Below are positions 11,075 to 46,000 of a stretch of 64,000 nt of DNA, piece by piece. Below the pieces are notes generated by a model, which saw nothing but the letters and a program-made list of their open reading frames with translations, ran no database searches and was not told the origin of the DNA. The DNA is from Thalia democratica (taxonomy: Eukaryota). The DNA lies in the NCBI GenBank assembly GCA_965202585.1, contig OZ241826.1, positions 77,748,001-77,812,000 of the forward strand, given 5' to 3'. Made by a program: the position numbers and the translations under genes. Within the stretch, counting starts at the first letter, position 1. The number at the start of each line of letters is the position of its first letter.

Positions 11075-12049
11075 CTTTGTATTGTTTTAGAAAACGCATC
11101 TAAATTAGTTCCAAGCTTTCTACAATATACTATATAAACCCATTCGTTTACTTCTAATAATTTTACCTTTGACTACAGTTCTTTTAAGTTTACCTAATAA
11201 GCGATACGTAAAAGACTTAAAACAACTTTATACAGAACGTAGAATATTTATTTTTCATTGTATAAGTTTTATATTTAGTTTGACACACTATTACAACATG
11301 AGTTAATAATTTCGCCTTTTAAAATAAACTTCTTTTTTTTCAAAAATGTTACTTAGTACCTTGATGTTTGGTTTAAAACTTGTTATCAAAATAACCTTAA
11401 GTTAAATAATATTTTATCTAAAAAAAATCTTTTAAAGGTCTGATAGTTAGTTTAAGTGTTCTAAGTTTTGTTAAAACTACACTTTTTGCTAAACAGAAGT
11501 TTATGTTTTCATAAAATTATAGAAAATATATGAGCAGTACATTTGAATATTTATGGCAAAACACTTTAAAATATTTTTTTTTTATTTAGTTCGACTGTAA
11601 GTCACCTGTAATTTAAAATGTCTTGAAAGCCTTTATTCTTACATTGTTTTGAAATTGTTATCGACTAGAACATTTTTGTTATTGAGAAATAAGTTATGGA
11701 ATGAAAACAAACAAAAAAATTTAAACTCAAATGAATTTACTGTTTTAAAAAAAAAAATTTACTATTGAAATAACAGTCTTCTTTTTAAAATCGAGAAAGT
11801 TTAAATCGAGTTTTTAAAATACTTAATTTAAGGCTGGACACAAATAACTTTAAGAAACAAAATGTTTTGATTGTAGCATTTTTTTAACTTTTTTTATTGT
11901 TATAAATTATAAAAAATAAATAATTAGTAGATCATAATCAAAACTTTTTTACTTAAAGGAAAATTTTAATTCAAAACCTTTATTTTCTTCAAAACATAAG
12001 TATTTTAAGTTTTTCCGCACAAAATGTTTCGTCTAAAAGAAAAGTTTTA

Positions 12050-12405
12050 GGACAAGTAGTTTTAATCGACAGTGACAGTGTGCTTATTTTTGTGTAGAGC
12101 ATCAGCGTGTAGGTTTAGAAACTCTGTGAAAAACGTATAACATTTTAAAGCAAACACATTAATAAACCAACAAGACAAGCTTGTATACTGTTTTTAAATA
12201 ATTTCACACTATTGAGAACCCAATTGTCAATAGCTTTTCGGTCTTTCATGTTATTATCAATAGAAGTTATTATTTGCCTTATGCTCTGAATTATATGCTC
12301 TGCTTGACATTTTTTTGGTCTTTGCTCGTAAAAAGTAAAAGTACCACTTTTTGTGTCACTTAATTTTATTCGTAGACTTAATTCTATTTTCAAGAAACAG
12401 TTCAT
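12050..12405 (-). pseudogene. Inverted, decayed paralog of the CTLD membrane gene (copy A)
   Basis: SGTFTFYEQRPKKCQAEHIIQSIRQIITSIDNNMKDRKAID aligns with SGTYTFYDKRVEKCEAEQICQSKGQILAPITNMEDRKAIE. A key Cys is lost and a stop follows after 86 codons. Confidence 0.8.
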
Positions 12406-14775
12406 CGCAAATACAGTTTAAAACATTAAAAACTTAATAATGGTAAAATTGGTAACAGCTAAAATACAGTTTTGAAGCGAAAATACCAAAATTTTTGAGT
12501 AACATATAGATTGTAAAAGATTAAAACATTCAAAAACAATTTAGACAGCTCATTTGTAATTTTACGAGCTGAGCGGTTGAAAAAGTAAATAATTCTGTAA
12601 AGAGAAAGTATAGCGATTTTACTACATTCTTACATCACAAAAACATGTGTTTTTAAAGTATTTATAAAGTTCACAATTAAAAAACAACATACCTTTTTTT
12701 TTAAATATAAATATATCTTTAAAATTATTAGCCTTTAATGCTTCATTTGAATTTTATTATTAATAACGCCTTTTTAAGTTCATCTTGTTAAATGTTTTCA
12801 TAATAAAGTTTTTGTAAAAAAGGTATCAAAATTCAAACAACTTTACAAAAGTATCATACTTCAGATAAAGTTCTTAATTTTTAAATCTACATACACATCT
12901 ACTTTTTCTCATTTGCAAGCCAAATGGTAACAAAAAAAACATGCTTATAACTTTCAATACTATTTTTTATTTAAAAACAGACTAAAATTTTTCTTTGTAT
13001 AAATTTAATTTGACAAGAATTTTTTTTTTTAATTATGTTTGTGTTGACGAAATTTAAACTATTGTAAAACTGCACTCTATCACAACACAATCATGTGCAT
13101 TTAAACATTTGGCACTTGATACTAAGTGAAGCTTAACCATTTTTCAAATTTTGACAAAAGTATTAAATTAAACAATATAGATGTAACTTTTTTTTCATTT
13201 TAGCTACTTTTCAATAAAATAAACAATATAAAAACAACTCATTTACAAAACATTTTTTTCAATCAAATACTATGCTGTTTTTAAGAAAATTAACAAGCCC
13301 TATTAACAAGTAAAAAAAAAACATAACAAACAGATAGCATTAATTAAAATCCTTTGTAGAATGATAAATCAAAAAATAGGCTAGAAAATTTTAGCTTACC
13401 ATATCACTACAACTAAACTTACAAAAATTTCTCATGGTCGTTATATATTTATTTTTTTTTTGAACAACCGATGATATAAGTATAATAATTTTTTTAACAA
13501 AAACAAACATACAGCTGGCTGTAACTTTAGTTTTTTTTCTTATCTACTTTCTTTGGTTAAGACAATTGAGTATTTATATATACACATATATCTTAAGTAA
13601 AAAATAAAATTAAAACTTAAAACAGTGACTTGCTTTAACAAAAATACTAAAAACTATTTATAAAATAAAAACTTGAATACAATACAGTAGTCCGGAAAGA
13701 ATGAAAAACAAGTAATATAAGCTGATAAATATTTGTTTTTAAGGCCATTGAAAAACAACTTAAAAACTGTGTCAAAGTTACTTCTTAAAATAAAAAACAA
13801 CTCAAGATTTAAACTTTGACCGAAATTTACCAAGAAAAGGGTAATGCAAATTAGAAATTAAGAATATAGTTTTGATTTTAAATTTGATTATAGAGTTTTT
13901 TAAGCTTACGTTATTATAAAATTTTAAAGCTTATTTTTAGAAAAACAAGTTTTATTGTGATCGTAAGTTGCTTTAGAGTTTATAATCTTAACCTTATGCA
14001 AGAAAAACCAAGCAAATTTTATCAAAGGTTTTTCTAAAACATCCATGCTTAATTTCATTGAATATCTTACTTAAATCTATAGCGTTATATGCAGTATTTT
14101 AAAACAGTTAGTTTATGTTTAAAACATTTTATTGGTAAAAGTATTTTTTTATACACAGTAATCTGCCGAGTAACTTTGCAACGTTATAGTTTCGGTTTTA
14201 AGAGAAAAAAATATTGTACTCAACATTTTAAGCTGAGTTTAAAACTGCTACAAATCTTTGCACCTGACATATATCTTCGCTTTTATCACAAATTTTTTCA
14301 CAAAATAAATTTGTATTTCTAAACTTTTGAACTAATCTTTTTCGATATAACGATTAAGTATAAATAATTAAGTAGTTACAATTTTTCTTAACTTAAATTA
14401 TAAGTTTTTCTTTATTTTAATGTTGAAATTGTTAAAATCACAAATATTTTAACTCACAAGACTTTAAAGTTTAACTTAAAAGCCAAGCTTTTAGTAATTG
14501 TTTTCGTATAAATATAAATACAATATTTAATAAACGCTTGTTTATATAAACAAAAGTCATGAAATTAGATTTTGTATTTAATATTTATCTAATGTTTTAC
14601 AGGTAGAAACCATTTAGTTTGCTTAGCCAAGTAAAACTTGCTTTCATTGAAAACTTTAAAGTGAGAATTTAAATGTATTATTACGTCACTATACTAAGCC
14701 TTCAAGTACTGAACTTAGTAAAACGGAAAGTTTTAGTTTAAGTATTAGAGTGGCGCTTATATTCAAAGTCTCAAT

Positions 14776-22445: not shown

Positions 22446-25400
22446 TTAATTTCCTTCTTCCACGTCCATCATGATTTGGTCGAGGGCGGAATCTTCAAAG
22501 TCGTCCTGGGGTGCTTGTTGCTTAGCAACCCTGGTGGGTTTGGTTGGCATGGAAGCCTGCCAATCGATGTTGATGTCTTCCTTCTTCGAACTTTTCTTCA
22601 TCTCGCGAGGTTTTCCTCCTGAAAATTTTAATAACTTTCCTTAAATAATACATTACAAGTTTCAATTTCAAATCTCAAAAATTTTTTAAAACAAAAAGTT
22701 ATTAATTCAGGGTTCCGAAAGGTTTTTTGATAACTTTTTCCAAGATATCCGAATTTATTCTAGGTTTTTAAAAGTACATGTTATTTTGTCCATATTTAGT
22801 ACAAAGTTAAAATTAAGGTAAAAAACTGCTTTCAATAGTATAACAACATTGAAAAGATTCTGCAAAGCTACTAGTGTTTTATGATAAACAAAAATTCTAA
22901 ATACTTTTTTATGTTTGTGATAGATTTTTGGAATCAAATTAAAATTTCATTACTTACATGTAAAAGTTGTTTAAAATTCTAGGTATTTTTTTGGTTTTTT
23001 TTTTTTTGCGTAATTTGTAAAATTCTAGGTTCATTGCAAACCCTTTTAATTTTAAGTTACTAAAAAAAAACAAATATTTGTGAAAACATAATAATAAGTT
23101 ATAAATTATTAAAACTAATAACCCTAACAGACTATCAATATAATTTTATTAATTTCGTACAAATATGTTTGTATGTACTAAGTTATCACCTTTTGTATCA
23201 AGCAAATAAGTTTAAACTTATTAATGAGTACTTTATAATATTAACTTTGTATAATTTTTTGTTTGAATATAAATGTATTTTATTTATTTTATCTTCTTCG
23301 TGTCCCGTTTAAGTGGCTCAGGTTTTGATGCTTGAGTCCAACATTGCACAATAAACAATATAATGATAATAATATAATTAAGTTTAAAAATATATTGAAA
23401 TGAAACAAACCAGTTAGAATTCTTCTACTTTCATCAAAATATTGATTAGGATGAGTTACTTGGAACGCCGTGTGGTCAGACATCTGTAAAAAATAAATCA
23501 TTTTGAGATTTGTTTTGAAGCATCAAAAAATATAATAATAAGTAAAGTATTAAACAAACAAACTATAAAATTAATTCAAGTATAGAAAAAAAAGAATGAC
23601 AGTGAAATATTTTTAGGTTTTTTTAACGAAGTAGAGGTTCAAAAATAAATGATTATAATATTTCAAAAAAACGTTCTAAACAAATACAACAACAAACCCC
23701 GTGAGTGACAGCGAAATACTTCTGACAAGCTATCTGGTAGTGGTGCTTGCTTATCAATTGTACTATTTGCTCAATTGCGTCTGTGGGGCACTTGTACGAG
23801 GATAGCCGTTGTCTCAACACCTGTTCGCTACAGTGCTTGAACGGGCAGCCTGGTGTGTTTGTATTACATATAAAAAATATACGGATTGGATATCTGTCTC
23901 AGCTGCTTTAATTACTTTGAGAAACAGACCTTGCGACTTGAAAGGTATTTTAAGACTGCGAGTTTTTTGGTAGCGAGAAAAAAAGAATCATACTGGGGTT
24001 TACTGACAACGGTGTAAAATTGAAAAAACGAAGGGTTGTAAAAGAAGCCTCTTGTTATAACAACCACTCGGTAACAAGTAGAAACTAAATATACAAGTTG
24101 CAGAAATGCCTTGCGACGCAAAAATACAACTTAAAACTTGTTTCATAGATTGAGGAAGGATATTTATGACATAAATTTCATTTTACAAAACTTATATATT
24201 TGCTCTTTAAATACTACTACAAACAGACATATTTTACAATATTATCGTTCTTTAATTTCTTTTTAAACTACTACTTGTTATTGAAAACGTAAAAAATAAT
24301 AATTAAGTACAGATCTTCTTTTTTTTTTTTGAAATAGATATTACTGTTTTGAATTTTAAATCTTGAATAAGCTACAATGTGAAAAAAAAAAATTTAACAA
24401 TTGTGTTACAACAATACCCCATATTAAAACGTAAATAATAGTTATATTGTGTGCAAATTATCAAAGTGTTAACCGTGGTGTTCCTGGCTGGATTGGGGCG
24501 CATTGGTGGTAATTATCTTCATGCAGCTGAAAGGCGAATAGTTCACTCTTTTGCCCTCCTTTCCGTAATTGTGACGTATGTTGTAAGAATACTGCTTCTC
24601 AAACTGTTCATTGGTGTTTAATATATCTTAAATAAATATAAATACTATATGAAGTATAGTGCTCACATTATTCTTACATTTATAAAAGAAAAAAAAAAAC
24701 ATCAATTTCATTTTGACTTTATTTAAAGATAATAAAAACTTCATAACAATCTTCTCAAACTGTTCATTGGTGTTTATTCTTATTTAATTTACATTACGGT
24801 TAAATTTAGTAAAGTAGTAGTTTATCTAGGAATTATGAACATTATTTTCTAAGTTATGTTCTAATTAGTGATATACCGGATCCACTTTTAAGGATCCGGC
24901 CGGCTCCGGATTCTAAATTTTTTATGTAGTTTAAAAAGAGAACAAATTTATAAAATTTAGTTATTATAATACCATTAATCAGTAAAAACTGTTTAATACA
25001 AACATTTTGTTAAAAAAAACACAAAGTCTTTAAAAGTTTTTCTTTAAATAGTACAAATTCAAACCTTGTCGAGGTCTATCACTTTGGTGAATTCCCTCCT
25101 CCAAAACTTCAGCGCCGACTCAAGCGTGACGCCTATACCCTTCAAATAGAGGGAGTACTGCTGCCTGCCCTGGTACTTGAGGTGGTGGTCCCTCGTCAGG
25201 TTCTGGTGCAGGTTCCGCATGCACAGCGGGTACGACGTTTTCGACAACTGTGGGTTTTGATGAAAGCATTAACGCTGGTATCAAAGGTGTTTGTTGTGAT
25301 TTAATAAAATAAACTTATAGATACTTACAATTAAAAGCGATTATATATTTTTAACTTAATTTAGAAAAAGTATAAAATTAAGAAAAAAATGGTTACATAA

Positions 25401-27332: not shown

Positions 27333-27445
27333 GAAGGTGTTTGAGCTAATCAGTATATTTTCTATCCATATTTTGTAGGGTCATGAATTAAAACAAGTCA
27401 TCACTTCAGCTCGAATGTGGCATGAGTGGGATTCGAGCCCACTTC
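27333..27445 (-). mobile_element. 5'-truncated tRNA-derived SINE remnant at the duplication junction
   Basis: Body nearly identical to 62460-62553; retains only a T-arm/B-box hairpin GTGGG-CTCGAAT-CCCAC (minus strand). Confidence 0.6.
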
Positions 27446-27888
27446 GAAATTAACTTTTGACATTTATATGTTCTAAACTAAGGGTGGGCAAAGCCCAGGA
27501 GCTTAATCCTGCTATTTAATAGAAATCTTTGGCTTGCAAGGTATTTTAAGTTCGCAAACATATTTTTTTTAAACATGAGCTTTTGTTCAAAAAATTGTTA
27601 TAAAATGTTTTATTTATTTAGTTTTTGTACACAGCAGAGCCTTTCAATTTATTATTACGTTACAAATTTACTTTTAAATACTTTCTACTTCTGTAAGCAC
27701 ACGTTTATGTGATCAGATTTTTTATACAAAATCTTTTTACACTTTTTCCAGTGCTGCTGCACAAAAAAAACATTTAAGGTAAATCTGGCCGGCCAATTGA
27801 AAAGGCTGCCGACCCTCTCTTGTAGATTTTGTAATTTAATAAACCTAAATAAGTTCCCTAATTTAATTTACCTTTAAACTTCAAGGTA

Positions 27889-29694
27889 ATGAAGAGCAAA
27901 CCCCACTGCAACCAGCTCTTCCTGACCGGCCTGCAGTGGCCCAACATGTCGGGGCTGCAAATGTGGGTGAAGTTCATCGACCGCATCATCGAGGCGACCC
28001 ACCTCGACAACCAGGTCACCATATACGGGCCCAAGGGCGTCGAAGAGGTGGTCAGGAGGAGGCTGGAGCCCATGTTCTCAAAGACTCGAAAGGACAAGAT
28101 CTGGCCGCACGTGCTGTTCGTGGAAGTGGCGGACGGGCAAAAGGTGAAAAGCTCCCAAGTGACCGTGACCGCTCACGAGCTTTTAAAGGATGAAAACTTC
28201 ATGTACGAGGTCAACTGCGAGCTTCAAAAGGGCGGAGAAACGCGTAGAGCGAACATGTTTATTGCTGAAATGTCAGATACAAACCAAATGGAATCGATCA
28301 AAGACAAGTTGTCTGATATACCATGCAACCCAGATGACTCAAATTTTTTTGTGCAACAAGCTAACACAGGCGGAATTTATAATTTTTCTAATCAGCTACC
28401 CAACTGGCATGTTCTAACTCCCAATGACACCAACAAAGAAGGGAAAGTTGACGGTTGGGCTGTAAAGAACCTGATCAGGAGCGCATGCAACAAAATTTCC
28501 CCTGGTTTTTTCCCGCTGCATGGCAGAAATAATGTTTTAGACCAAAACCTGCTTGTTGATAATAATAATTTTTTTCAGCTCAGCGATTTTACGAACTACC
28601 TAGTAACCGGCACTTACGGTTTGGGCACAAACAACATTCATTCGGCCGAAAAATACACCAAAGTTTACAGAGACTTGAAAGAAAAGGTGGAGGCGGAAGG
28701 TGTGAGCGCGGATCGCACAAAAAGCAACTGCGACTTTCCAAAACTGACCGTGCTGGGGTGCGGGGACGGGAACGACAACTTCAGGAGTTGCAGCGCCTAC
28801 CTGTTGAAAACAACCGAGAACAGGTCCATGCTGATCGACTGCGGGCCGGGCACGCTTGAGGGCATGCTCAACCACTACGGGCGGGAAAGGTTCCACAAAG
28901 TTCTGAGCACGATCAAAGTCGTTTACATAACGCACAAGCACGCGGACCACGTGGGCGGGCTGGGCTCTCTGATCCACCACGTGTTGAAAACGAACGAGCG
29001 CGCGGAGGAGAAAATACTTTTGATCGGTCCGCCGTGGCTGCACACGCTCGTCCCCACCCAGGTGCCCACGGAGGAGTTCAGCAAAAAGTTCAGGCTGCTC
29101 AGCTTCGGCTTCCAACCGACCCACAACTGCCACAAGCTCGAAGCCGCCCTGGACGTCAGGAGCTTCAGGTGCGTGCTGGTGGAGCACGGGTGCCTGACCA
29201 AGGGCCTCGTCCTCGAAACCAACCGCGGCAACTTCAAGTTCGCCTTCTCCTCGGACACCCTCCCCATGAGCGGCCAGCTGATAAAGCACGGCATGGACGC
29301 CGACCTCCTCGTCCACGAGTGCACGTTCCTGGACCCGATGGCGGCCAAGTTCAAGATGCACTCGGACATGCAGGGCGCCGTGGACACCGCCAACAGGATG
29401 CGCGCCAAGAGCCTCATGCTCAACCACCTCAGCAGCCAGTTCCCCATGTACCCGCTGGTGGACAGGGACATTGATTTGCGCGGTTACCGGGGCAACGTGG
29501 TGGTCGCCATGGACAACTTGGAGGTGGGGCTGGGCGAGGTGGGCCGGTTGGCTCTGCTGCGCCCCCGCATGGAGAAAGTGTTCGGGGCCAGCATCGAGAA
29601 GTTTTACAGGAGGGCGGAGAAGAAGGAGTGGGTGAAGAAGTCGAAGAGCAAGAAGTTGAGCGACACTTTCAAGTTTGTCACCGGGACAGAGTGA
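27889..29694 (+). CDS. Long-form RNase Z (ELAC2/Trz1-like) metallo-beta-lactamase-fold nuclease, atypical, probably lacking 5' exon(s); 601 aa uninterrupted
   Basis: C-domain motifs: LIDCGPGT (I), THKHADH (II, HxHxDH), VEHG (III), SSDT (IV), HECT (HEAT), HSD (HST), NHLSSQFP (V). N-domain pseudo-motif LFLTGLQWPNMSGL..VTIYGP. An acceptor-like TTCAAG at 27885 opens in frame (GTA ATG). No symbol given because orthology versus a divergent paralog is unresolved. Confidence 0.9.
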   Translation: MKSKPHCNQLFLTGLQWPNMSGLQMWVKFIDRIIEATHLDNQVTIYGPKGVEEVVRRRLEPMFSKTRKDKIWPHVLFVEVADGQKVKSSQVTVTAHELLKDENFMYEVNCELQKGGETRRANMFIAEMSDTNQMESIKDKLSDIPCNPDDSNFFVQQANTGGIYNFSNQLPNWHVLTPNDTNKEGKVDGWAVKNLIRSACNKISPGFFPLHGRNNVLDQNLLVDNNNFFQLSDFTNYLVTGTYGLGTNNIHSAEKYTKVYRDLKEKVEAEGVSADRTKSNCDFPKLTVLGCGDGNDNFRSCSAYLLKTTENRSMLIDCGPGTLEGMLNHYGRERFHKVLSTIKVVYITHKHADHVGGLGSLIHHVLKTNERAEEKILLIGPPWLHTLVPTQVPTEEFSKKFRLLSFGFQPTHNCHKLEAALDVRSFRCVLVEHGCLTKGLVLETNRGNFKFAFSSDTLPMSGQLIKHGMDADLLVHECTFLDPMAAKFKMHSDMQGAVDTANRMRAKSLMLNHLSSQFPMYPLVDRDIDLRGYRGNVVVAMDNLEVGLGEVGRLALLRPRMEKVFGASIEKFYRRAEKKEWVKKSKSKKLSDTFKFVTGTE

Positions 29695-32600
29695 GTTTGT
29701 TTTCAATCTAATAAAACACTAGAGTTTATTTTTATAGTAGTAAAATTTATTTTAATTTTTTTAACTTATGAATATTTATTTTTCTAAAATTTTAGTAATA
29801 AAATAGTAAAGAGTTTTTGCAAAATTAAAAAAGTTTTTTTTATTAAATTATTCTATAGTTTATAAATTTTTACCTTGTCCATTTTAAACTTTATCTTGAA
29901 TGATATTTATGAAGATTTTTTATGATAATAGTTTTTTATTAAACTAAATGTTTTTAGATTTTAAAGGTTTACTGCAGTTTAGGTAATTTAGGAAATTCAA
30001 TATAGTTTTTTACAAGTCACAATATTTTCTTTAATCTTAAATATGTTTTAATATTTTTGTAAGTTTGAGTTGTAAAACTAAATACAAGGATTTTTTAAAT
30101 AGATTTATAAACTTAGGTAAACTTTTGCAACAACTCTTAGTAATTTGTAAGTTGTATAAAGTAACTTTACTTAAATTACTTTTAATTCTTTTCAAAAAAG
30201 TTGAAGATTGTGACTTTAACAAGAAATTATGTGCTAGTTTTGAAAAGTTTAAATTTTTTTTTATTTGTTAAATTTTATCACTGCTTTTTTTAGGTTTTTC
30301 AATCTAAAATATAATATTTGTTCGGTTTAGTGACTGTTTTTTTGCACTGCATTTTTTTTCTTTTATAAAAAAAAAAAAGAAATTTTTGTAGCATTTACCA
30401 TGTAAAACACGTTTCAAAAAAGTTATCATAATTTCTATCTAAGGATATAAAGTATTTTTGTGAATTTAAAATACTTGTTTTATCTATATTGGGTAATTTT
30501 TTTAAATTTAATTAAGTTATATGAAGTATTCAAATAGGAAGTTTTTTAAACTTAAATATTAAATAACCAACAATTCGTTGATATAAAAATATTGTTAAAA
30601 CAATATAATGTCGTTATTGTACATTTTAAAATATTTTTAATTTGCATCAATTCTCGTTGCAAATCAGACAAGTTTTATCCATTTTTCTGTAATTTTTATG
30701 AGCTGCATACCTTTTTTAATGTTATTATTCAAGTGTAAAAATTTTAAATTCCCTTTTTCATTGATTGAAAAACTAGGTGTATTTTTAATGTCAGCCTAGT
30801 CTTGTCACATAACATATTTGAGATAAAACCATATATTTATATATTTTTACAAAGAAAAAATTAAAATTATATTTTTTAAAACTGTTCTAAATTTAAAGAA
30901 AATTGTAGAAATAATCTTTGTATATTTTTAAATTTAAAACATATAAAAAAACTTTTAATACAACAGTTTTTAATTTTTAATGCAACATTTTTGAACAGCT
31001 ACTTTCAATTTATTAATTTTTTAAAATCAATAAACTTATGTGCTTTAAAAAAATATAATACTAAATTGAAGCTTTTAAAAGAACTTAATATGAGTATTTA
31101 AGAGTTTGTACAGTTTTAAAAACAGGGTTGCTAAAAACCTGGAATTTGACAAATAAGGCAAAAGTAAGTGAAAAATTTGAAACTTTGAACAAAAATCACT
31201 AATAAACTTGGAATTTAATACAATTTTAACATACTTTACTAGAAATTACTAAAAACTTATCAAATACAATTTTTCTGTTTTGTTAATTATTTTGTTTTAT
31301 AAAACACACTTAGAGTAGCATTACAGTATCTTTTATATATTTTATTCCTATTTAACACATTTTTTACCTTTAATTTGTTAAATACTTAAAAAGGATAAAA
31401 AACTTGTACTGTTAAAATCCTAGAACCTTGTAAAATATCATTTCCACAACAGTTTTTAACAAATTAAAAATGTTGGATGAAACTTGCAAATGTTTTTGAT
31501 TGAAGTAACAATAGTTTCTTTTAATCAAAGTTAATTTCCTTTTTTAGAAATTAAAAAAAAAAACAAGTTTTATTTTTAAACAGTAAATATTAATTTAAAC
31601 ACTACCAAGATGTTTTAAGGGCAGTTTAAGAACATAAATACAAGGAAGTTTTAAATAAACAGCTTCATATAAACATTTAACAGGTTTAACAACTTAGTTT
31701 AGAAAGGAAATGTCGTAAAGTAACAACGTAATATATTTAGTAAGGTAGAAAATAGTTATGTTAAATTATTAGTTTTATTTAAACTTAATTTTATAATCAG
31801 TACTTAGTGTATAAAAACCGTATTAACCTAATATTTTGGTCTAAACCTTGGGGACTTACTCGATATGTAGCAACTCTGCATGGGCTTAAAATGCATTGAA
31901 CTAGAAATAAGAGTTTTTAAGTTTTCACTGAATCAGTATGAATTATAAAATAAAGTAGAAAACAGCTTTAGTTTTTATCAATGAATTTTTACAAACTAAA
32001 GATAAAAATAACTATCTAAGCAAAAGTTATCAGAATTCATATTCCACCATAAATCAGTTTTTAGCAATTTTAGAAAAATGTCAGTTTGAATGCTTGAAAG
32101 TTTATGAACTATTAAAAGAAACTAAATTATTAAATACAAAAAAGTTGTAGTTAAATGCTGTAAAAATAAATAGCCAACTTGTAATTTATAGCATTTTATT
32201 ATTTTAACTATTTCGAAGTAGTCTTTTATCGCTAATTAATTAAGCGATCCAATACTTACAAGGTAATCAGAAAACTTAAAACAAAGATTACTTCTCTGTT
32301 GCATATTTAAATAAGAAGCTTTAGTTTGTACAAATGCTATACGTACTCTTTACTCTAAAAAATACTTGTGACACCTATGTAATGTCGAAAAACATTGATT
32401 TAATTTTCATAATCTAATTAGTGTTATAAACAATACCTTTAACAAGTTTTAAGTCACTTGAAACATGTATGAAGTATTAAAATGTTATAATGATATTTAT
32501 TATAATTATAATATGATTTTAGATAAGCTCTTAGCAGTGTGTGTCAGTTATCATTTTATATATAACATAGAATAAAATTGGTTTAAAAAAGACATAGAAA

Positions 32601-35010: not shown

Positions 35011-37486
35011 GTTAAAATCGTTCCCAATGAAAATTAGTTTCAGTAAAATGGTATAATTTTAGTACCAAAGCATTCTGTTTTATATTACTGATTGTATTTA
35101 ATTTATTAATTTAAATTCTCTGTTTAAAATTTCTAAACACCCATCACTTTTAATATTTTTCCTTAATTACAACTAAAAGCGCCAATAAAAGTTACAATTT
35201 TTAAAATATTTTAACTAAACCAATCTTTATTCATTAAAACAATCAAAAAATATTATTAAAAGTTGAGGTAATGGCTAGTAAAAGTAGGCTTTCGACAGAT
35301 TTTGCAAACAAGAGTTTATTCTTTCTTTAAAATACGAACACGATATTTGTTATTTTCAATATTTGCCAACTTTAGACTAAAAGGTGAACCCCTGGCAATT
35401 TCATCTGCTTTATGTCACTTGAACTAAAATCCGCTTCTTTAGTGGCAATCAGTCAAATGAATATTTATTTTCTAAAAAAATCTTTATAAATAAATTGTTT
35501 TTGATCTGCACGGAATCTTATCATTTTATCTTGAGACACGTTAGTAAACAAACTTTTAACACCTCACTGCACTTTTTAACAATTTTTGTCTGCGTCTATG
35601 ACTTTAAAAAAGTTTACATTAAAGAGCTAGGAAAACTTTATCAAATTTATTTGTATTTCGGAAGCTAACATTAAAATCTGCTTCAATTGTGTACTATCTT
35701 TTATTGTATTTGTCGCTTTATAGTTTTAATATGATGTCTGTTACAAAAGATTTTTTATGATTTGTTAAAGTTTAAAGATGGAAATCTTAATAAGTACTTG
35801 AGTTGTTTTTCATAAATTATGTTATTGTTACTTAATTTCTTGTTATAGTATTATGTTTAAATAGTTATATTAAAACTTATAAACGAACCTATAGTAGTTT
35901 ATTCGCGATTTTACAAAAAATACTTTTTATTGTAGTATTTAATATTTGAGTAATGATAATTTTTTTTTTTGAAACAAGTCTTATTTTGTTTTTTTATTCT
36001 TAAACACTAAACAAATTATAAGATAAAATTTTACTATTATTTAAGTCACATATGTTATATGGACACATCTACAAAAAATGGGAATTATTGCACTAAAATA
36101 ACTTATAGTAAGAAATTATTACATTAATAAAAGTAGTTATCTTACGTTTAATGGAACTAGTACCTCTATTCAAAACTGGTTACATTTATTCAATATGCAT
36201 ATAATTTCCTAAATTAAGTAAATAAATTTTTTCAACTCAAACTTTTAATAACTGAATAAAACATTCTATAAACATTTTGTTATCGGCTTTTAAAAACGTT
36301 ATACTAAACTTTTTTTTATTAATGCATTTAGCCGAACTGAATTAATTTATGTAATATTTTTATGTGCTTGGAAATATTTGTTATTTAGTCTCAAGCTGAA
36401 TAAACGTGTATAGTTGTAAACGGTGTTATTTAATAAATTAAACTTTTCAAAAAAAATTGTTAATCTTTTATTGGCCATAAAAAGTATTTTAGAAATATGG
36501 AAAACTTTGTAATTTTTTCTTATGCATTTAAAAATTTTTGTTAATAAGTATCAAACTCGTTTAAATATCACAAGAAAAGTTTAAGTGTACAAACTACTGA
36601 GTTTTTTCATAGTGTAAAATAGTCAACCATACAAAAATTACACTTGAAAAAAGTTTATTTATGCATAACTAATGATTCGTGATTTATGTAAAACTAGCAC
36701 AAGTGTATTACATACTTTTTTAAATTTATAGTTTTAAGACACTTTAAATTTTGTTATTGTACCTTATTTTAAAGTTTATTTTTTTCAAATTTTATTACAA
36801 AATCACCAGCTTTAAGTTACAATAAGAACTCCCTTAGCACTTATGCTTTACTAAAATTGTTTATTTTAAATTTAAATCAATAAAAACCATGTCATACATA
36901 TCACAATTTATAGCATTATTATTATTATTAATAGTAAAACAAACTAAGTTTTTATAAACAAGAAACATCAATAAACACTTATAGTTTATTATTAAATTTA
37001 GTTATTTACTTACAGTTTTTAACACAAAAGTACTTTCGTATAAACACTTTTACTTTACTTAGTATTAAAAAGATTAAACCAGTGCTTAGTACACGTATTG
37101 TTTTTAAGGTAACTAATATAAAAGAGCTTTAGAATCAAACAGTTTATTCACATTTAAAAGTTATAAAACTACGAAATAACAAATAAAAGCAGAGCATATT
37201 TTTCATGTTGAGTAAATAATAAAAAGTTGATTACGTTTAAAACTGTAATTAGTTAAAAAAAAGTTTGTTAAATTACATTATATGTACAAAAATTTTTTTT
37301 TAGTAATTTACAGCTATAAATCACAAATTCAAGAAAAAAAAAACATTTTTTAGCTTCTTTATACATATCTTGGTAAAATTGTAGAAAAAAGAGAGTAATA
37401 TTTTATTTTTACTTTGTCCATGAAAAGATTTTTTCAAGTTTCAAAGAGCAAAACTATAAAATTCATTGAAACAAAAAAAAACAGGT

Positions 37487-40154
37487 CTATGAATTGTATT
37501 CATCCTCCGCTAGTCTCATATCGAGTTCTTTTAACTATAAATTTTAAGTAGTAATTTATTTTACTGAAACTGAACTTTTTAGTACTAGCATTAAAATGTA
37601 CCTGTATTGTTTTCCTATATGTATATATATACATATATATAATAATAAAATAAACTATGAATACTTTTTGTTTAAGTATATAGATAAAACTAGTTGCAAA
37701 AGACAAAAAGTTCACCTTGTTTTGGTATTCAAGCGTAGTGCGTTCATACTTTTTCGAAAGATCGCTGAATACAGTTACGAAATTTTTGTACTTCATGTAC
37801 AACTGAAATACAAAATAAGATAAGCGAAAATTGTTATTTTAAATCTAAAAAAATTTTGATTTAGTATTTGTTATGTACATTTCGAAGTTGAACTTTTGTC
37901 TAAATGAATTTCAATTAAAGGGGGATTTTCAACTTTAATGGTAACTTTTTAATTCATACATACTTTAGAATTATTTAAAAGTTAAAACTAAGTTTAGTTT
38001 GAATAAATAAGAAAGGTTACAGCAATGAATAGTTTGTTGTTCTTTAAATTCTTATTTAAGAGCTTTAATTTTAAGGCACTAACTAAATGTCTTTGTTCAA
38101 CGTTTTTCTGTCTCCTTATTTCACTAACATAAGTGACCTAAAATTTTTAAAACTGTTAAAAATGTAGTCTTTGACCGAATTACGTTTTTTGTAAGATGTG
38201 TTTTTAACTAACTTTTGTTATAATTTTATCTTTAAAAGTTAAATCTTTAAAGCATAATTGGCTTAAGAAGCAAAATTAGTTTATTTAAAACTTCAACAAA
38301 CATGTTCCAGTTCGCCTTCAAGTAACTTGATTTTTTCGTCACGATAAAAAAGTGTTTCTTGCATTTGTAAATATTTGAGAGCATACTCTCTTCTCATTTC
38401 GTCCTGTGTCTATTAAATAGCTAAAATAAATCTTAAGTTTGAAACATTAAAAGTTTTGTGAAATATTTTGTAAGTTTATAACACTTTCCGCTAGGTTAAG
38501 ACTGTTTATTATTAGAGTAAGCTATTAGCGCTTTAAATTACTTACTAAAGTTAATACTATTGTTTTTATTTCAAAGTGTTTTAAACAAACTTTTCACAAT
38601 CAGCTTTCAAATTAACTAACTTATTGTTTTTCTTAAATCTACTAGAAAAGTAAATAAAACAAAATATGATTGTATATAACAACATAACTTATTCTAAACT
38701 TTTATATTATAAGAATTTTGTTAGCGAACCTTTTTTTTTTGTTACGCGTTTCAACAAATCAAAAACTTATATTCCGTTATACATCTATTTTACCTTTCTT
38801 TTAATGAAAAATTTTGATAATGGCGTAAATTACTACCTACTTCCTAGTTTTAAATTACATTTTGCTTATAGTAAATGAAAATCAAAAAAGCTAATATGCT
38901 AATCAAGTTCAAGACAATTTATTACTTTGTTGAACATTGTTTGTTTATTAAGTTAAGTTTCTCATATACAACTAGATTACATGCGCTTGAATAAATTTGA
39001 TATCAAACAAATATTTGTTATAAGCGAAAATAACAAAGATTGTATAAATTTTAAACGCTAACTAAGTTTTTAAGACGTTTTTCTTCTTCTAGGTATTTTT
39101 GTCTTGTTAGTTCAACTTGCTTCTTATGTTTCAAAATATTTTCATCAGTTTGTATTTCTGCATCCTGTTTGTCGAGTAAACATTTTATGAGTAAAAATAA
39201 AAACTTTTCAAGAGCAAAACCAAGTTAATTTAGAGAAAAAAATTTAAGCCTTTCACGCTAAAGAATTTATGAATTATAATTTCTTGTTTAAAAGGGTATT
39301 TTTAATATTCAAAACTTTGGAAATTTTAGTTTTGATTTTAACATTGTTTTTTTTTCAATGGTATAATATGTCTTTTTTATTCGTACCTTATTTAACAATT
39401 ATAGTACAATGTAGGCTCATAAATTTCTAAAACACTAAAATCAATCAAAAAAAAACCTACTTGAAACTTCAAAATAGTTGTTTGAGTTGAAACAAATTTT
39501 TCAGGAGGTAATTGTATCTCTGTCTGGCATGAACTGCTACCAATTTTGTCATCAGTTGGTATACGTTGGTAAAAATGTTTCTAAAAATGTAAAAATTATT
39601 TCATACTTATTATTTTTTTTTGGGCACACATTTATTAATTACCTTTTTCTGTAAACATTTTTTTTTAGTTAAAGCAAACACATAAAACTTTGTATATGAA
39701 TTTTAAATATTTTTAACGCAAACCTTTTGGTAGTACAGCAATGATATCGTTAGAAAAGTGACGGTTACAAATGACGCTATAACAATCACAAGAGCAGTTA
39801 AATAGTTGTTTGGTTCGTCAACCGACTTACATATAGCAAATCCTACCTTCTTGTAAAAAGGGTCGTACTTTTTGGGTTTGAATGAGTGAGTCAATAAAGG
39901 GTTGACAATAAAAATTGATGAATAATTATACGATGAATATCTAATTAAGTTATATTTGCTCTCTTTAAACTTGTCTGTGCATCGTGTTAAATATTTTTGA
40001 AGTGTGCCTCTTCTAAAAATTTCTTCATTAGCCAGAATACTTTTTTCGCTCTTACAAGACTTTATGTCTTCATGGAGCAACCCAGTCTTTACTTTAGCTA
40101 TAAAGTACCTATTTTGACCGTCGTAAAACTTGTCACAATTTTCAGGTAGTGGCG
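37487..40154 (-). CDS. Single-pass membrane receptor, copy B (homolog of 7006-9560)
   Basis: Exons complement(39724-40154, 39461-39580, 39063-39164, 38302-38409, 38084-38137, 37716-37802, 37487-37534): ..PLPENCDKFY..RYFIA..SCKSEKSILA..ICK..TM..YYQK|KHFYQRI..SSCQTE..VSTQTT..|DAEIQTD..|TQDEMRREY..ELEH|VTYVSEIRRQKNVEQRHL|LYMKYKNF..|LKELDMRLAEDEYNS*. The 431, 120, 108, 54 and 48 nt exons match copy A in length. Confidence 0.85.
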
Positions 40155-40900
40155 CTGTATAAGTATTTCAAAGTTAAAAATAGTATAAGTAAGTTATTTC
40201 ATTATCTAAAGACAGCAACCTCAAATAGTTATAGTTTTTTTTTTTAAGTTTACAAAAAACTATAAGCTTAAATAAAAATTACTACGTTTTACTTCACCTA
40301 TAATTAAACTGTAATTAGATTCAATAACATGTACTTTAAATACTTTTAACATACATGTTGCTTAATAAGTAATGTTTGTTAAAAAATAACTTAATTGTTG
40401 TATACTTTCTAAAAAAATTTGCTTTTACTTTAGTTTTTATATCTCAGTCATTGTTATAGTTGAAATAGTCAACAGTTTTTTTATTTTTAGTAAGTAACTT
40501 TTAGTTTTTCAAATGTTCTTTAAAGACATTGTTAAGTACAGTAAACTTTTAGATAGTAGACCAACTTTAAAAACAAGCTTACACTTTTTGAAAGATGTAA
40601 TATCTTTTTATAACTATTATATATTTTATAAATATAACACAAGCTAAAAAACCTGATAGTCCGTTTTCTCCCGTAATTGTCAGCAAAAAAATCCAAAATT
40701 TAAGTTTAAATATAATCATCTGAAACAGATAAGAAAATTAATTATTTAAATCAAATATGGTATTCATTAAATATTATTTTGTTTTACAACGTTCTCCATA
40801 AAACTATTTTTTAGCCAACATAAATGTTAAAACCTTTTTTTTAAACCCGCAAATAATCTGCTTTTATTGTTTATAGATTTTAATAACATAAAAGCTTTAA

Positions 40901-41605
40901 ATGGTTTTAAAACTAGAAAAAAATTGCCCTACAAGTATTACTACTAGTACAGGTACTTTTAATTTCTACGAGGAAAAAGCACTAAAATGCGAAGCAGAGC
41001 AAATATGTCAGAGAAAAGGGCAGATACTAGCTCCTATTACGAACATGGAAGACCGCAAAGCTATTGAAAAGATAGGTGGTCAGGAATGCGGAATTTTTCG
41101 AGAGAGTATACAAGGTTATCATGTTGGTTTAGAAATTAAGGCGTGCGGAAATAAGTTTACCAAAGTGTTTTCAAACGGAGTCAAATACAATAAAACTTTA
41201 CACGACAAACTGTACTATTTTTACCCAATAAAAAAGTTTGACTGCCTCACTGCGTTGTACCCACCAGGTTACGGAGCCGATGAACAAATTGTGGTAGTTT
41301 CGAAGTCTAATAATTGTAAAGGTTACGTTAGGAGGTTTATTTGTTTGGATCCGGCAAAACCAGACAATAACTCAACTGTCACTAAAGAAGCTCTTCATCT
41401 TAAAAGGTCTAAAAGAAGTGAAAATTTTAGCGAGGATAGTGTTTTATCAGGCCGACAAAACATGTATTTTATGTCTGAAGTTTTCGGCTTTTGCTTTTTA
41501 GCAACTGCATGTTGTTTTCTGTTTGTAGCAAATAGAAAGCTCAAAAAAAGAGTCAATTTTCTGGAAATGAAAACTGAACCATTTACCAACGAATGTAAAC
41601 ATTGA
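40901..41605 (+). CDS. C-type-lectin-like membrane protein, copy B, 234 aa
   Basis: About 66% identical to 10370-11074 by manual alignment; same Cys, RSKR and TM; in-frame TAA immediately before the ATG. Confidence 0.85.
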   Translation: MVLKLEKNCPTSITTSTGTFNFYEEKALKCEAEQICQRKGQILAPITNMEDRKAIEKIGGQECGIFRESIQGYHVGLEIKACGNKFTKVFSNGVKYNKTLHDKLYYFYPIKKFDCLTALYPPGYGADEQIVVVSKSNNCKGYVRRFICLDPAKPDNNSTVTKEALHLKRSKRSENFSEDSVLSGRQNMYFMSEVFGFCFLATACCFLFVANRKLKKRVNFLEMKTEPFTNECKH

Positions 41606-42689
41606 GCTTTTTAGATAAAATATCTAAAACAATTCTAAGCTTTCTTTTTTTACTATTTATACTCATTTGTTTATTTTTAATAGCATTATCTATGTCTATA
41701 AATCTTCCAATTTTGTTACTAAGCTATATGCAAAAGACTTAAAAGAAATATGTACAGAACGTACAACACATTTTTATTTGTATATTTAATTTGACACATT
41801 ATTACAACATAACTTGGTATGTTCGCCAAATAAAATAAACTTGTTAAAGTACTACTCAGTTTTTTGCTGTTTAATTTAACATATTGTATCAAAGTAACCT
41901 TAACTTTACTTAGTTTTGTTTAAAAAAAACTTTTAAATGTCTGATAGTTAATTTAAGCGTTACAAAACATTATTATTTATTGAACAACAAAAAATACACT
42001 CGAAAAGTTTGGTCCAAGGACCTGGTATACAAAAAACCTGTCATTTATAAAGTCATATACCAGAACAGTTTAATGTCATGCCCAGGACTAGGGTTACAAG
42101 TTTTTTCACTTTAAAAAAACCATTTAAAAAAACATAAGTTTCCGTTTTCATACAAATATTGAAAATGTGTGTTGTACATTTTAATATTAACAGCAAAACA
42201 TTTTTTAATAATTTTATACTAATCAGTGTAAGTCCCCCTGTAAGTTTAACCTTCTTAAAAGCATTCAGGTTAATATTTTTTTAGACTGCTTTTAATCAGA
42301 ATTATTTTCATTATGGTAGAAATGTTATAGAAATAAATTGTGGAGAAAAACAAACAAAACAACTTTAATTTAAGTAAAATTAATGTTTTAAAATAAATCT
42401 TTTGTTATTGAAATAACAGTCTTTTTTTAAAGTTGAGAAAGTTTGGATCGAAACTTAAAAAAAAATAACTTAAAGATGGATAAAATAACTTTAATGTAAA
42501 AAGTATTTTTCTGGCTGTAGCATTTTTGTAACTTTTTTTATTATTATAAACTTTAAAAATTAAATAATTACTATTCCTAGATTAAAAAAAAAGTTACCAA
42601 ACTTCTAATTTAAAGTCTTAACTTCCTTCAAAACTTTAATTATTATTATTTCTTCTAGAATAAAAGTTTTCACCCAAGTAGTTTTAATT

Positions 42690-43005
42690 GACGGTGACAG
42701 TATGCAAAATTATGTTTCATACTAAAAATCTGCATGTGAGGTTTGAAAACTCTGTGATGAGTTTCAAATGTATAAAAATTTTTTTAAGTAAACATATTTT
42801 AAACATGACAAGTTTGTACACTTTTTTAAATACTTTCATACTAAGGACTACTTATTTGTTCAATAGCTTTTCGATCTTTCATGTTTGTATTAGGAGTTAT
42901 TATTTGCTCCATGCTCTGACATATATGCTCTGCATGACATTTTTTGGTCTTTGCTCGTAAAAATTAAAAGTACCACTTTTTGTGTCGCTTAATTTTATTC
43001 GTAAA
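42690..43005 (-). pseudogene. Inverted decayed CTLD paralog (copy B)
   Basis: SGTFNFYEQRP, then a 1-nt deletion in an A-run (about 42941-42946), then CHAEHICQSMEQIITPNTNMKDRKAIEQ. Confidence 0.75.
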
Positions 43006-46000
43006 TGCAGTTTAAAATATTAAAACTTAATAATGGTAAATTTGGTAACTGCTAAGATACAGTTTTGAAGCAAAAAAACAAAATTATTGAGTAACATATA
43101 GCTTGTGGAAAATTAAAACATTCAAAAACATTTTAGATAGTTCATTTGTTTTTTTACGAGCTGAGCGGTTGAAATAGTAAATACTTGTGTAAAGAGAAAG
43201 TATAGCGATTTTACTACATGCTTACATCATAAACACATGTGTTTTTAAAGTATTTTGAAAGTTCACAATCAAAAGGTAACATATCTTTTTTTGATTGTAA
43301 ATATATCCTTTAAATTATCAGTAATTAATGCTTAATTTAATTTTTATTATTTATAATACTTTTTCAAGCTATTCTTATTAACTGTTTACATAAATAGATC
43401 TTTGTAAAAAAACATATCAACATTCAAACAATTTTAAAAAAGTATCATACTTCAAATAGAGTTCTTAATTTTTAAACCTACTTACACATCTACTTTTTTT
43501 TTTGATTTGCAAGCAAAATGGTTACAAAAAAACATGCTTATAACTTTCAATACTATTTTTTATTTTATTCAAAATATTTTAGTTTAATTCAAAAACAGAC
43601 TAAAAATTTTAATTTGACAAGAGTCTTTTTTTATAATTATGTTTGTGTTAACGAAATTTAAACTGTTGTAAAACTGCACTATATTACAACACATTCATAT
43701 GCATTTAAACATTTGGCACTTGATACTAAGTGAAGCTTAACCATTTTTCAAATTTTGTAAAAATTTTGACAAAAGCTTTAAAATAAAAACATAAATATAA
43801 CTTTTTATTTTAGCTGTTTTTTAATAAAATTAACAATAATAAAACAATGCATTTTTTAAACATTTTTCTAATCAAATACTATGCTGTTTTTTAAGAAAAT
43901 TAAAAAGCCCCATTAACAAGTAATACAAAATATAACAAACTATTAGCACTAATTTAAATTCTGTGTAGAATAATAGATTTCATATTTAAATTCCAATCAA
44001 CAAATCAAAAAAATAGGCTAGAAAATTTTAGCCTACTAAATAATTACAACTAAGCTTACAAAAATTTCTCATGCTCGTTAAATTAAAAACTTTTTTTTGA
44101 ACAACCGATCTTATAAGTATAATAATTTTTTTAACAAAAACAAACACACAGCTGGCTATAACTTTGTTTTTTTTTTGCTTAACTACTTTTTTTTGGTTAA
44201 GACAAATGAGTATGTATATATACACATATATTTCAAGTAAAAATTAAAACTTAAAACAGTGACTTGCTCTAACAAAAGAACTAAAAACTATTTATAAAAT
44301 AAAAACTTGAATACAATAAAGTAGTCCGGAAAGAATGAAAAACAAGTAATATAAGCTGATAAATATTTGTTTTTAAGGCCATTGAAAAACAACTTAAAAA
44401 CTGTGTCAAAGTTACTTCTTAAAATAGAAAACAAGTCAAGATTTAAACTTTGACCGAAATATACCAAGAAAAGGGTAAAGCAAATAAACAAATCTGAATA
44501 TAGCTTTGATTTAAAATTTGATTATAGAGTTTTTTAAGTTGACGTTATTCTAAAATTTTAAAGTTTAATTTTAGAAAAACAAATTTTATTGTGATCGTAA
44601 GTTGCATTAGAATTTATAATCTTAACCTTATGCAAGAAAAACGAAGCAAATTTTATCAAAGGTTTTTCTAAAACATCTATGCTTAATTTCATTGAATATC
44701 TTACTTAAATCTATAGCGTTATATGCAATATTTTAAAACAGTTAGTTTATGTTTAAAACAATTCATTGGTAAAAGTATTTTTTATACACAGTAATCTGCC
44801 GAGTAACTTTGCGACGTTATAGTTTCGGTTTTAAGAGAAAAAATTATTGTACTCAACATTTTAAGCTGAGTTTAAGGGTGGCTTGGCGTTTAGCCAACAG
44901 ATCCTTCGCTCTATTGAGCACAAAAGATAGCTTTTTTTAAGAGAGTGTTCAACGTTTAAAAAAAGCTTACTGATATCTAATATGAAAGTTCATTATCGTG
45001 TAAATAGTTAAATAGCGATGAAACCAATGCGAGTTGGATAAATCAAATTTAAATATCAGTTTTAAACGGGAATATTTTCAAGTGTTTCTTACTGTATTCT
45101 TACACTATACTTTATCTAACTTTTACTACTTGCACAAAATAGTTATGTTGTTTTTTGGTTAAAATATCTAAATAAATATTATTTTATTTAAAATTACATG
45201 TAAAAAGCAACCTTACCTATTCAAAAATTATTTTAAATATAAATAATTTATTGAGACAAAATGAATGTTGTTTAATAAAACTTATAACAATGATTTTAAA
45301 AGTTTTAAACAAAAACTTTATTATTTTTCTACACTCAACGTAAAATAAAATTACACGATTTAAAAATATTTTCAATAAAAGCATAAATGAAAGTATTTAA
45401 ATTATAAAATTAATTTCTATGCACAAAGGGATATTTTTAACAACTATAAAACTATTAATTTTTTCTATTTTATTAACAAACTAATAAAAAGTAGCATCTA
45501 CTTACTTATAGTAAAACAACTAATTGTATATTGATAAGAGTTTAGTTTAGACTTTAAGATATATATAGAGGTGTGCAAATTAATCATTTTATTCGTGACC
45601 GGTTTCGGTGGCAAAAATTGCAACATATTAAATATTCAATTTGCATACCTCTATTTAAATAAACTCTTTACATCCCAGATTCCCAGAAAATTGAGCATTC
45701 ATTTTTATTTAAGGCAAATAACTATATGACTTTTAGACATAAAGATGATTAAACTGGTAAACGAATATACTTTTTATCCTAAAACAAAAAAGAAATTGTT
45801 GAAACGTAATAAATCAAATTTATAGATTAAAAAGTTGGAATTTGATCAGTTTTAACTTAATAATAAAATATATAAAATTTATGATTAAAATAAAAACAAA
45901 AATCTTTTCAAAGGTAATGACTAGAACTTTTTTTTAGTAGTAATAAGTAAAAACTTTTAAAGTTTCAATTAAATGTTATCAAAATTAGTTTTTTATTTAA

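Follow-up and report, generated by a model that had tools for sequence, protein, structure and literature searches.

A long-form RNase Z and its missing arm

What becomes of a long-form RNase Z when the arm with which its relatives read the tRNA elbow is gone? The question is raised by an open reading frame (ORF) in the genome of the salp Thalia democratica (801 Mb, 1833 contigs). The ORF lies at positions 27889-29694 on the plus strand of a stretch of 64,000 nucleotides (nt) (C1:77748001-77812000; hereafter the window) and encodes 601 amino acids in a single open frame. Positions given without a contig or locus name are those of the window and, unless stated otherwise, of its plus strand. A preliminary description had taken the ORF for a long-form RNase Z whose active site is intact but which apparently lacks both the arm and the PxKxRN loop, and had proposed a nuclease freed from canonical pre-tRNA recognition, possibly acting on elbow-less mitochondrial tRNAs. 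Our analysis confirms the features described and supports the proposal in part, though for the family to which the ORF belongs and not for the window copy itself, which is probably an idle duplicate: on balance we favour the view that salps possess an armless, probably mitochondrial family of tRNase ZL (ELAC2), of which the window holds a headless, probably idle copy.

Searching the ORF against Protein Data Bank (PDB) sequences with phmmer paired residues 279-581 with human ELAC2 447-758 (E 2e-32), followed in the ranking by yeast Trz1, B. subtilis RNase Z and human ELAC1, and the C-terminal half was matched by the Pfam families Lactamase_B_2 and Lactamase_B. When 100 long-form RNase Z sequences were aligned, the columns of residues D317, H349, H351, D353, H354, H433, D456, H476 and H491 proved invariant, and those of H513 and D542 nearly so. 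Motifs I-V are all there, including the zinc-binding His motif II (HKHADH, residues 349-354; 28933-28950), and HEAT, HST and AxDx are found as HECT (H476-E477), HSD (H491-S492) and AMDN; the active site is therefore complete, and phmmer and the 100-row alignment both confirm the catalytic motifs claimed earlier. As for the rest of the protein, the N-domain carries a His-less pseudo-motif II, LFLTGLQWPNMSGL, which pairs with the canonical IFxTxxxWxNxGGL, and AlphaFold2 (AF2) predicts long basic helices at the C terminus (548-564 and 566-598; residues 548-598, 29530-29682). These helices are the counterpart of the ELAC2 C-terminal helix, and in a structural alignment by VIA-align this region carries a match to human ELAC2 residue 791-794.

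The flexible arm is absent and the PxKxRN loop degenerate

The distance between two landmarks, a Tyr in the strand that leads into the arm and a Cys in the 'DCP' strand that follows it, is 63 residues (interquartile range 63-64) in canonical animal ELAC2 proteins and 21 in the salp proteins. A comparison by hhalign of the salp profile with a profile of 16 non-tunicate ELAC2 proteins left about 63 canonical columns unpaired, among them those of GVPPGP...LKxGxDVTLxDG. In the AF2 model of the window ORF (predicted local distance difference test (pLDDT) 84.7, predicted template modelling score (pTM) 0.88), the site of the approximately 50-residue flexible arm of ELAC2 and Trz1 is occupied by a tight beta-hairpin (residues 103-126; 28195-28266) formed by strand 103-114, a two-residue Gly-Gly turn and strand 117-126, after which the chain continues as helix, strand, helix and strand. 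No protrusion was seen elsewhere in the N-domain of the window model, where the preliminary description had allowed that an arm might reappear. The model of a full-length relative, P0002 (pLDDT 80.8, pTM 0.84), has the equivalent hairpin at 247-272, and both models superpose on human ELAC2 and yeast Trz1 across both domains (Foldseek E 1e-40; VIA-align Z approximately 40 for human ELAC2, with 515-537 residues aligned at a root-mean-square deviation of approximately 4.2 Å, and Z 37 for yeast Trz1).

The gap could in principle stem from misassembly, faulty gene calling or a skipped exon, and the short arm of another match, Strigamia model P0093, may be just such an annotation artefact. For the salp protein we regard this explanation as very improbable. 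The continuous ORF recurs in two genomic copies, on a TARA scaffold, on an unrelated contig whose product is 53% identical and in a cDNA contig; the latter is colinear with the window over 27884-28353, across the arm site, so no hidden exon supplies the arm. The earlier statement that the flexible arm is missing thus draws on the residue spacing, the hhalign gap, the AF2 hairpin and the colinear cDNA. Two details of the alignments were discarded on the way. One was an alternative MAFFT pairing of salp 'LSDIPCNP' with canonical 'VVVDCP', disfavoured by the strand-helix-strand order of the AF2 model (the arm columns are empty for salp proteins in either placement of the hairpin); the other was a second deletion after 'VDGW' in a small alignment, of which neither the large alignment nor the AF2 model retained any sign.

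The P-loop (PxKxRN) of the window ORF, GCGDGNDNFRSCS (residues 290-302; 28756-28794), lies opposite GTGSAIPMKIRNVS of human ELAC2, anchored by the invariant columns G290 and R299, and retains only the invariant Arg (R299). It has 7 residues versus 8 in the canonical loop and reads NDNFRS. Among other tunicates, Phallusia has TTSTTERS and Styela MKDHEKRC, and Ciona (MPHKYRA) and Clavelina (QPFKTRS) keep P-x-K-x-R. Judged from these alignments, the degenerate loop characterises tunicates as a clade and is not confined to the salp protein. The loop that the earlier description called replaced has lost P, K and N but kept the Arg.

The armless protein is the ELAC2 of the salp

A first homologue search returned two close relatives and otherwise only bacterial short RNase Z proteins; an exhaustive profile search, with 86 matches below 1e-30, reached ELAC2 proteins. 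The armless family comprises the window copy, a parent copy described below, a relative with 91% identity found in a TARA metagenome, and P0002, the relative with 53% identity, which has the same architecture. Past this salp group, the best profile matches were the 754-amino-acid (aa) protein P0020 (6e-95) and then the ELAC2 proteins of Phallusia, Ciona (727 aa), Clavelina and Styela. A quick maximum-likelihood tree (LG+C20, with support from the Shimodaira-Hasegawa-like approximate likelihood-ratio test (SH-aLRT) only and no bootstrap) placed the salp proteins inside the tunicate ELAC2 clade (SH-aLRT 100), with P0020 and then P0021 as their successive sisters and a long stem (1.22).

A whole-genome search with a profile of canonical and tunicate ELAC2 proteins recovered just the two armless copies and two exons on contig C2 that belong to ELAC1; no second long-form RNase Z gene was found by it. 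A search of the same genome with the tRNase Z N-terminal family PF13691 was blank and uninformative, and the sole further Lactamase_B_2 match in the genome is DCLRE1A/SNM1A. Since the genome search yields no other long form, the armless parent is, on present sequence evidence, the salp's ELAC2 orthologue; it is not an extra gene that accompanies a canonical one. Comparison with the TARA relative gives an omega of 0.34-0.38, and the armless family is judged from such comparisons to be under purifying selection.

Two further features of the tunicate genes deserve mention. The ELAC2 homologues on contigs of 15 kb (P0020), 578 kb (P0027) and 2.6 Mb (P0029) are single continuous ORFs, and locus L003, which encodes P0002, has no intron at the site of salp intron 1; as the human gene is divided into many exons, the tunicate gene may have been replaced long ago by a retrogene or may have shed introns on a large scale. 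In addition, a motif F-[ED]-x-R-L-[KR]-W-x-x-[LM] precedes the first N-domain strand in the salp protein (parent exon 1, L002:628-670), in P0020 and in the proteins of Phallusia and further members of the tunicate clade. It is absent from non-tunicate ELAC2, AF2 draws low-confidence helices there, and it might be a partner-binding or RNA-binding addition.

The window ORF is the 3' exon of a truncated tandem duplicate

The second genomic copy lies 72 kb upstream (C1:77703884-77705686) and is 97% identical to the window ORF in protein and 98.2% in nucleotide sequence. The two differ at 33 coding positions, and letters peculiar to the window copy include C at 28225, A at 28727, A at 28820 and T at 29629. 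It belongs to a complete parent gene, C1:77702903-77705689, with two exons and a product of 723 aa. Parent exon 1 (L002:520-882, ATG ... CAG/GTAATA; 121 codons) encodes a basic, presequence-like N-terminus followed by the first three strands and the first helix of the N-terminal pseudo-lactamase domain; a 615-bp intron (L002:883-1497) separates it from exon 2 (from L002:1498, TTTAAG/GTA ATG), which encodes the whole remainder. In a 787-nt contig of cDNA run X6, the 3' end of exon 1 is followed directly by window position 27884/27886, matching the parent exon junction ...CAG/GTA ATG, and intron 1 is therefore spliced in vivo.

The window holds only the homologue of exon 2 (27886-29694; ATG at 27889, stop codon at 29692-29694), with no stop and no frameshift relative to the parent, and its ATG corresponds to Met123 of the parent protein. 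A candidate poly(A) signal, AATAAA (29710-29715), was read 16 nt past the stop codon. The 743-aa relative P0002 reaches approximately 140 residues further N-terminal than the window ORF. When this N-terminal part was used in tblastn, the exon was found beside the upstream copy only (L002:508-891, E 1e-26), with no match within the 64-kb window, and exon 1 DNA is single-copy across the genome. Homology between the two copies in blastn begins at C1:77703446, equivalent to window position 27447, inside parent intron 1, leaving a 439-bp remnant of the 3' part of that intron (27447-27885, with the acceptor AG at 27884-27885) ahead of the ORF; the duplicated block extends to approximately 44875. In structural terms, VIA-align sets window residue 1 opposite human ELAC2 residue 98, and in the P0002 model the part missing from the window ORF corresponds to strands 95-101, 110-117 and 120-126 and helix 130-139.

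The salp's one ELAC2 (tRNase ZL) gene has thus been duplicated in tandem without its 5' part, and the window ORF is the 3' exon of this truncated copy. It is not a complete protein or gene, lacking exon 1, the N-terminal strands and an inherited promoter, and should not be annotated as a complete gene. A processed retrocopy was considered and ruled out by the 439 bp of intron 1 before the exon and by the large duplicated block. The preliminary description had also envisaged an unexpressed, truncated duplicate of a canonical gene; the duplicate is indeed truncated, but its parent is armless and not canonical.

ELAC1 and the mitochondrial setting

The short RNase Z of the salp, ELAC1, is encoded by a multi-exon, complete-looking gene on the minus strand of contig C2, a different chromosome from that of ELAC2 (G000:C2:34684317-34701304, loci L019-L021), with colinear exons. 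One exon, MSFDIAFYGTGSGYPMPCRG, carries a PxPxRG loop, which is of the metazoan ZS type (PMC3433465). The exon with the His motif is approximately 70% identical to human ELAC1 (E 2e-20 versus 3zwf), an arm exon aligns with the arm of B. subtilis RNase Z (174-206; E 2e-4), one further exon carries motif III, and another carries HEAT, HST and motif V. The initiating Met stands six residues ahead of the GTG of the fold, which, barring an undetected upstream exon, leaves no room for a presequence.

The N-termini of the parent protein and P0002 have 6-7 Lys/Arg residues, and their first acidic residue is at position 40-41. We identified the mitochondrial genome in contig C1833 (L028, L029), which has 14,120 bp, a GC content of 0.33 and COX1 with TGA codons. 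ARAGORN in metazoan-mitochondrial mode called 30 tRNAs on it, some of them probably false and with duplicate isoacceptors; TTC occurs in the T-loop of none of the 30 and GG in the D-loop of two, and the T-loops are 3-10 nt long; the D- and T-loops of all are non-canonical. The tRNA genes abut or overlap in runs, for example at C1833 1-194 and 693-1289. The earlier idea of elbow-less mitochondrial tRNA substrates fits these loop counts, the presequence-like N-terminus of the parent and the presence of a separate, arm-bearing ELAC1 with no presequence. Apart from C1833, COX1-like fragments containing all three kinds of stop codon in number were noticed at C4:56.84-56.94 Mb and C757:31294-32138, and are probably nuclear copies of mitochondrial DNA.

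Is the window copy used?

Divergence between the window copy and the parent is 1.5-2.5% over 27447-29644, intron remnant included, 3-7% up to approximately 30830 and 9-17% beyond. Substitutions in the remnant amount to 1.5-2.0%, equal to the coding part; the intact ORF therefore needs no selection to explain it, a young overlay or a gene-conversion tract being sufficient. When changes were polarised with the TARA relative, the parent lineage had 9 synonymous and 8 non-synonymous changes (p 0.004 versus neutrality). On the window lineage we counted 8 GC-to-AT changes and 1 AT-to-GC change, compared with 5 and 10 on the parent lineage (Fisher p 0.013; small numbers), a substitution bias which, within the limits of such counts, suggests that the window copy is relaxing toward its AT-rich background.

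All runs of read data consisted of assembled contigs. The X6 cDNA contigs have mostly parent-type letters, and exon 1 is the sole 5' end observed among them. Contigs of set X3, from the same species and spanning 27463-29723, are mosaic, with the parent letter at 23 sites and the window letter at 29 others, including a 6-bp indel; the mosaics stem either from genuine conversion or polymorphism of the paralogues or from the assembler popping bubbles. The marine metatranscriptome X1 contributed short pieces, one of which has G at 28890, a letter specific in the reference to the window copy. No copy-specific RNA from the window copy was seen in the contig data, which cannot exclude its expression.

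The window copy could instead be a working gene, whose transcription would begin at a newly acquired start or result from read-through, and whose RNA might be capped by spliced-leader trans-splicing at the orphan acceptor 27884/27885. The copy would then yield a nuclease of 601 aa, truncated at the N-terminus and devoid of a presequence, that resides in the cytosol or nucleus in a new role. Such use would agree with the ORF being intact across 1806 nt, with the metatranscriptome letter at 28890 and with the window lineage's 7 synonymous to 8 non-synonymous changes (neutral expectation 1:3.7; p 0.026). It would also agree with the good acceptor that ends 3 nt before the ATG, an acceptor-then-ATG layout ('TTTTTACAG') that recurs at the true starts of the parent and of L003 and hints at trans-splicing. 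We nevertheless consider a working gene unlikely: the inherited promoter is absent, the product would be short of three core strands and one helix of the N-domain, the cDNA is mainly parent-type with exon 1 as its only 5' end, the substitutions drift to AT, and youth or conversion accounts for the ORF. Most likely, we infer, the window copy is idle and has been kept like its parent by youth or gene conversion.

Trans-splicing occurs in tunicates. In the parent (L002:505-522) and the distant relative (L003:90-110), the true start ATG follows the 'TTTTTACAG' acceptor by 2-4 nt, an arrangement that looks like a spliced-leader trans-splice site or an intron in the 5' untranslated region. The called start of P0002 (TTG, L003:47) is probably 19 codons too early.

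A proposal for the function of the armless enzyme

The arm of human ELAC2 recognises canonical tRNAs by their G19-C56 elbow and, on degenerate mitochondrial tRNAs, rests instead on the N-terminal domain of TRMT10C (PMC11996679), while P-loop residue K495 binds pre-tRNA (PMC11602120). For the salp, we suppose that the full-length parent enzyme would be imported into mitochondria and would cut tRNA 3' ends, in a genome in which tRNA genes abut and the tRNAs offer an arm no canonical elbow. It may bind its substrate through contacts of the catalytic domain with the acceptor and T-stem together with the basic C-terminal helix 548-598, and perhaps with the help of partner proteins. Salp ELAC2 would then be released from nuclear substrates, for which, as for cytosolic tRNAs, the arm-bearing, presequence-less ELAC1 is the candidate enzyme. 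Tentatively, we propose that salps carry out mitochondrial, and perhaps all, tRNA 3' processing with an ELAC2 that has neither arm nor PxKxRN loop and does not read the elbow, ELAC1 having taken over nuclear pre-tRNA. What the sequences show directly is the structure of the gene, its truncation in the window, the loss of the arm, the orthology, a spliced mRNA with the exon 1 that only the parent has, the ELAC1 gene and the features of the mitochondrial tRNAs; that the enzyme is active, where it resides, how ELAC1 and ELAC2 divide their work and that the window copy is idle, we infer.

Several considerations tell against this picture. Human ELAC1 is not known to be the main nuclear pre-tRNA processing enzyme, and the proposed division of labour is for that reason a guess. 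The AF2 models are not fully independent, as their input alignments already held the gap at the arm, and the presequence call on the parent N-terminus is a qualitative signature drawn from composition only. Even on elbow-less tRNAs, the human mitochondrial enzyme continues to employ its arm, through a contact with TRMT10C (PMC11996679); a lack of elbows in the substrates therefore does not by itself explain why the arm was lost. Finally, some use of the window copy is possible, given its intact ORF, the 7:8 ratio on its lineage and the G at 28890.

A different view is that the family, no longer processing tRNA, has turned to general phosphodiester hydrolysis, to other RNAs or to the deAMPylation of proteins, mitochondrial tRNA 3' ends being made otherwise. 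Schilling and colleagues reportedly found in 2005 that ElaC proteins devoid of the exosite keep activity on bis(p-nitrophenyl) phosphate. Deleting arm residues 250-298 from human ELAC2 abolished processing (PMC11996679), and RNase Z has been reported to have deAMPylase activity (PMC12663964). Yet the armless gene is the only long form found in the genome, ELAC1 has no room for a presequence, the tightly packed and overlapping mitochondrial tRNA genes need an endonuclease, and the ascidian orthologues, whose P-loops are equally degenerate, are those animals' only ZL genes (PMC3433465). We therefore hold the loss of tRNA processing to be distinctly improbable and retain the armless mitochondrial tRNase as our working proposal.

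Composition and neighbouring features

The window ORF has a GC content of 0.42-0.63, versus 0.16-0.32 in its flanks. Its coding sequence was also measured at 0.55-0.63 within surroundings of 0.16-0.30. The TARA relative is equally GC-rich in its coding part and AT-rich in its flanks, the 53% relative has a GC content of just 0.3-0.47, and lectin-like genes nearby are rich in AT. The cause may lie in biased conversion between gene copies, in the level of expression or in codon usage. A foreign origin of this GC-rich ORF in AT-rich DNA was ruled out, its nearest relatives being tunicate ELAC2 proteins and its intron and flanks being native.

On the minus strand at 22446-25247, ORF translations show PRIM2-like exons (for example 25059-25247 and 23653-23820) that extend toward the duplication junction; because they lie on the opposite strand, this gene gives the window copy no promoter. 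A tRNA-like or SINE-like (short interspersed nuclear element) stretch, GGGATTCGAGCCC, at 27400-27450 stops exactly at the junction. ARAGORN called no tRNA gene in the window, this stretch at approximately 27400-27450 included, and many loose read ends there indicate that it is repeated in the genome. Paralogous single-exon ORFs of 234 aa with a hydrophobic C-terminal stretch occur at 10370-11074 and 40901-41605, both within an approximately 30-kb in-window repeat (6015-14589 and 36525-44875). Elsewhere in the genome, the DCLRE1A/SNM1A homologue (C1:51216116-51218158; L023:1116-3158) is a single exon of 680 aa with a DRMBL domain (E 2e-86 to 4b87).

Comparison with known RNase Z systems

Cryo-EM and deletion work of 2024-25 casts the arm as indispensable for substrate binding by ELAC2, whether through the tRNA elbow or through TRMT10C. 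In the salp, the lineage's only ELAC2 orthologue has lost the arm and is nonetheless under purifying selection, which makes it a natural experiment on a minimal long-form RNase Z. The case could show how ELAC1 and ELAC2 share nuclear and mitochondrial duties, and how an enzyme co-evolves with degenerate mitochondrial tRNAs.

Like human ELAC2 (PDB 8cbl, 8rr1, 9ey0 and 8z0p), the salp protein has two metallo-beta-lactamase-fold domains, a linker and a C-terminal helix, with complete catalytic motifs in the C-domain and a His-less pseudo-motif in the N-domain. Unlike the human enzyme, it is without the flexible arm (human approximately 250-298) and has lost P, K and N of PxKxRN; overall identity is approximately 22%, the salp gene has one intron, and the window copy additionally has no counterpart of human residues 1-97. 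Ascidian ELAC2 shares one clade of the tree with the salp proteins, is likewise very divergent from vertebrate ELAC2, and has degenerate P-loops in which just the Arg is invariant as well as the N-terminal F-[ED]-x-R-L-[KR]-W motif. The Ciona protein CinTRZ2 (727 aa, our P0025) is 19-20% identical to human ELAC2 (PMC3433465). In contrast to the 21-residue salp hairpin, however, ascidian proteins have an insert of 52-61 residues or longer at the arm site, without a GP motif, and Ciona and Clavelina keep P-x-K-x-R. Protein P0020 has 39 residues where the arm would be.

Yeast Trz1 (PDB 5mtz) has the same long-form architecture but, unlike the salp protein, both the arm and the PxKxRN loop. Human ELAC2 lacking 250-298 combines an absent arm with an intact active site, as the salp enzyme does, but is inactive on tRNA (PMC11996679); the salp form differs from this engineered deletion in being natural, under purifying selection and the only long form in its genome. 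Salp ELAC1 belongs to the same superfamily as the window ORF and shares its catalytic motifs, but has a single domain, a PxPxRG loop, a canonical arm, several introns and no presequence. The tRNase Z of Thermotoga maritima is a naturally short-armed enzyme with an intact active site; its reduced arm likens it to salp ELAC2, whereas its short-form homodimeric organisation sets it apart.

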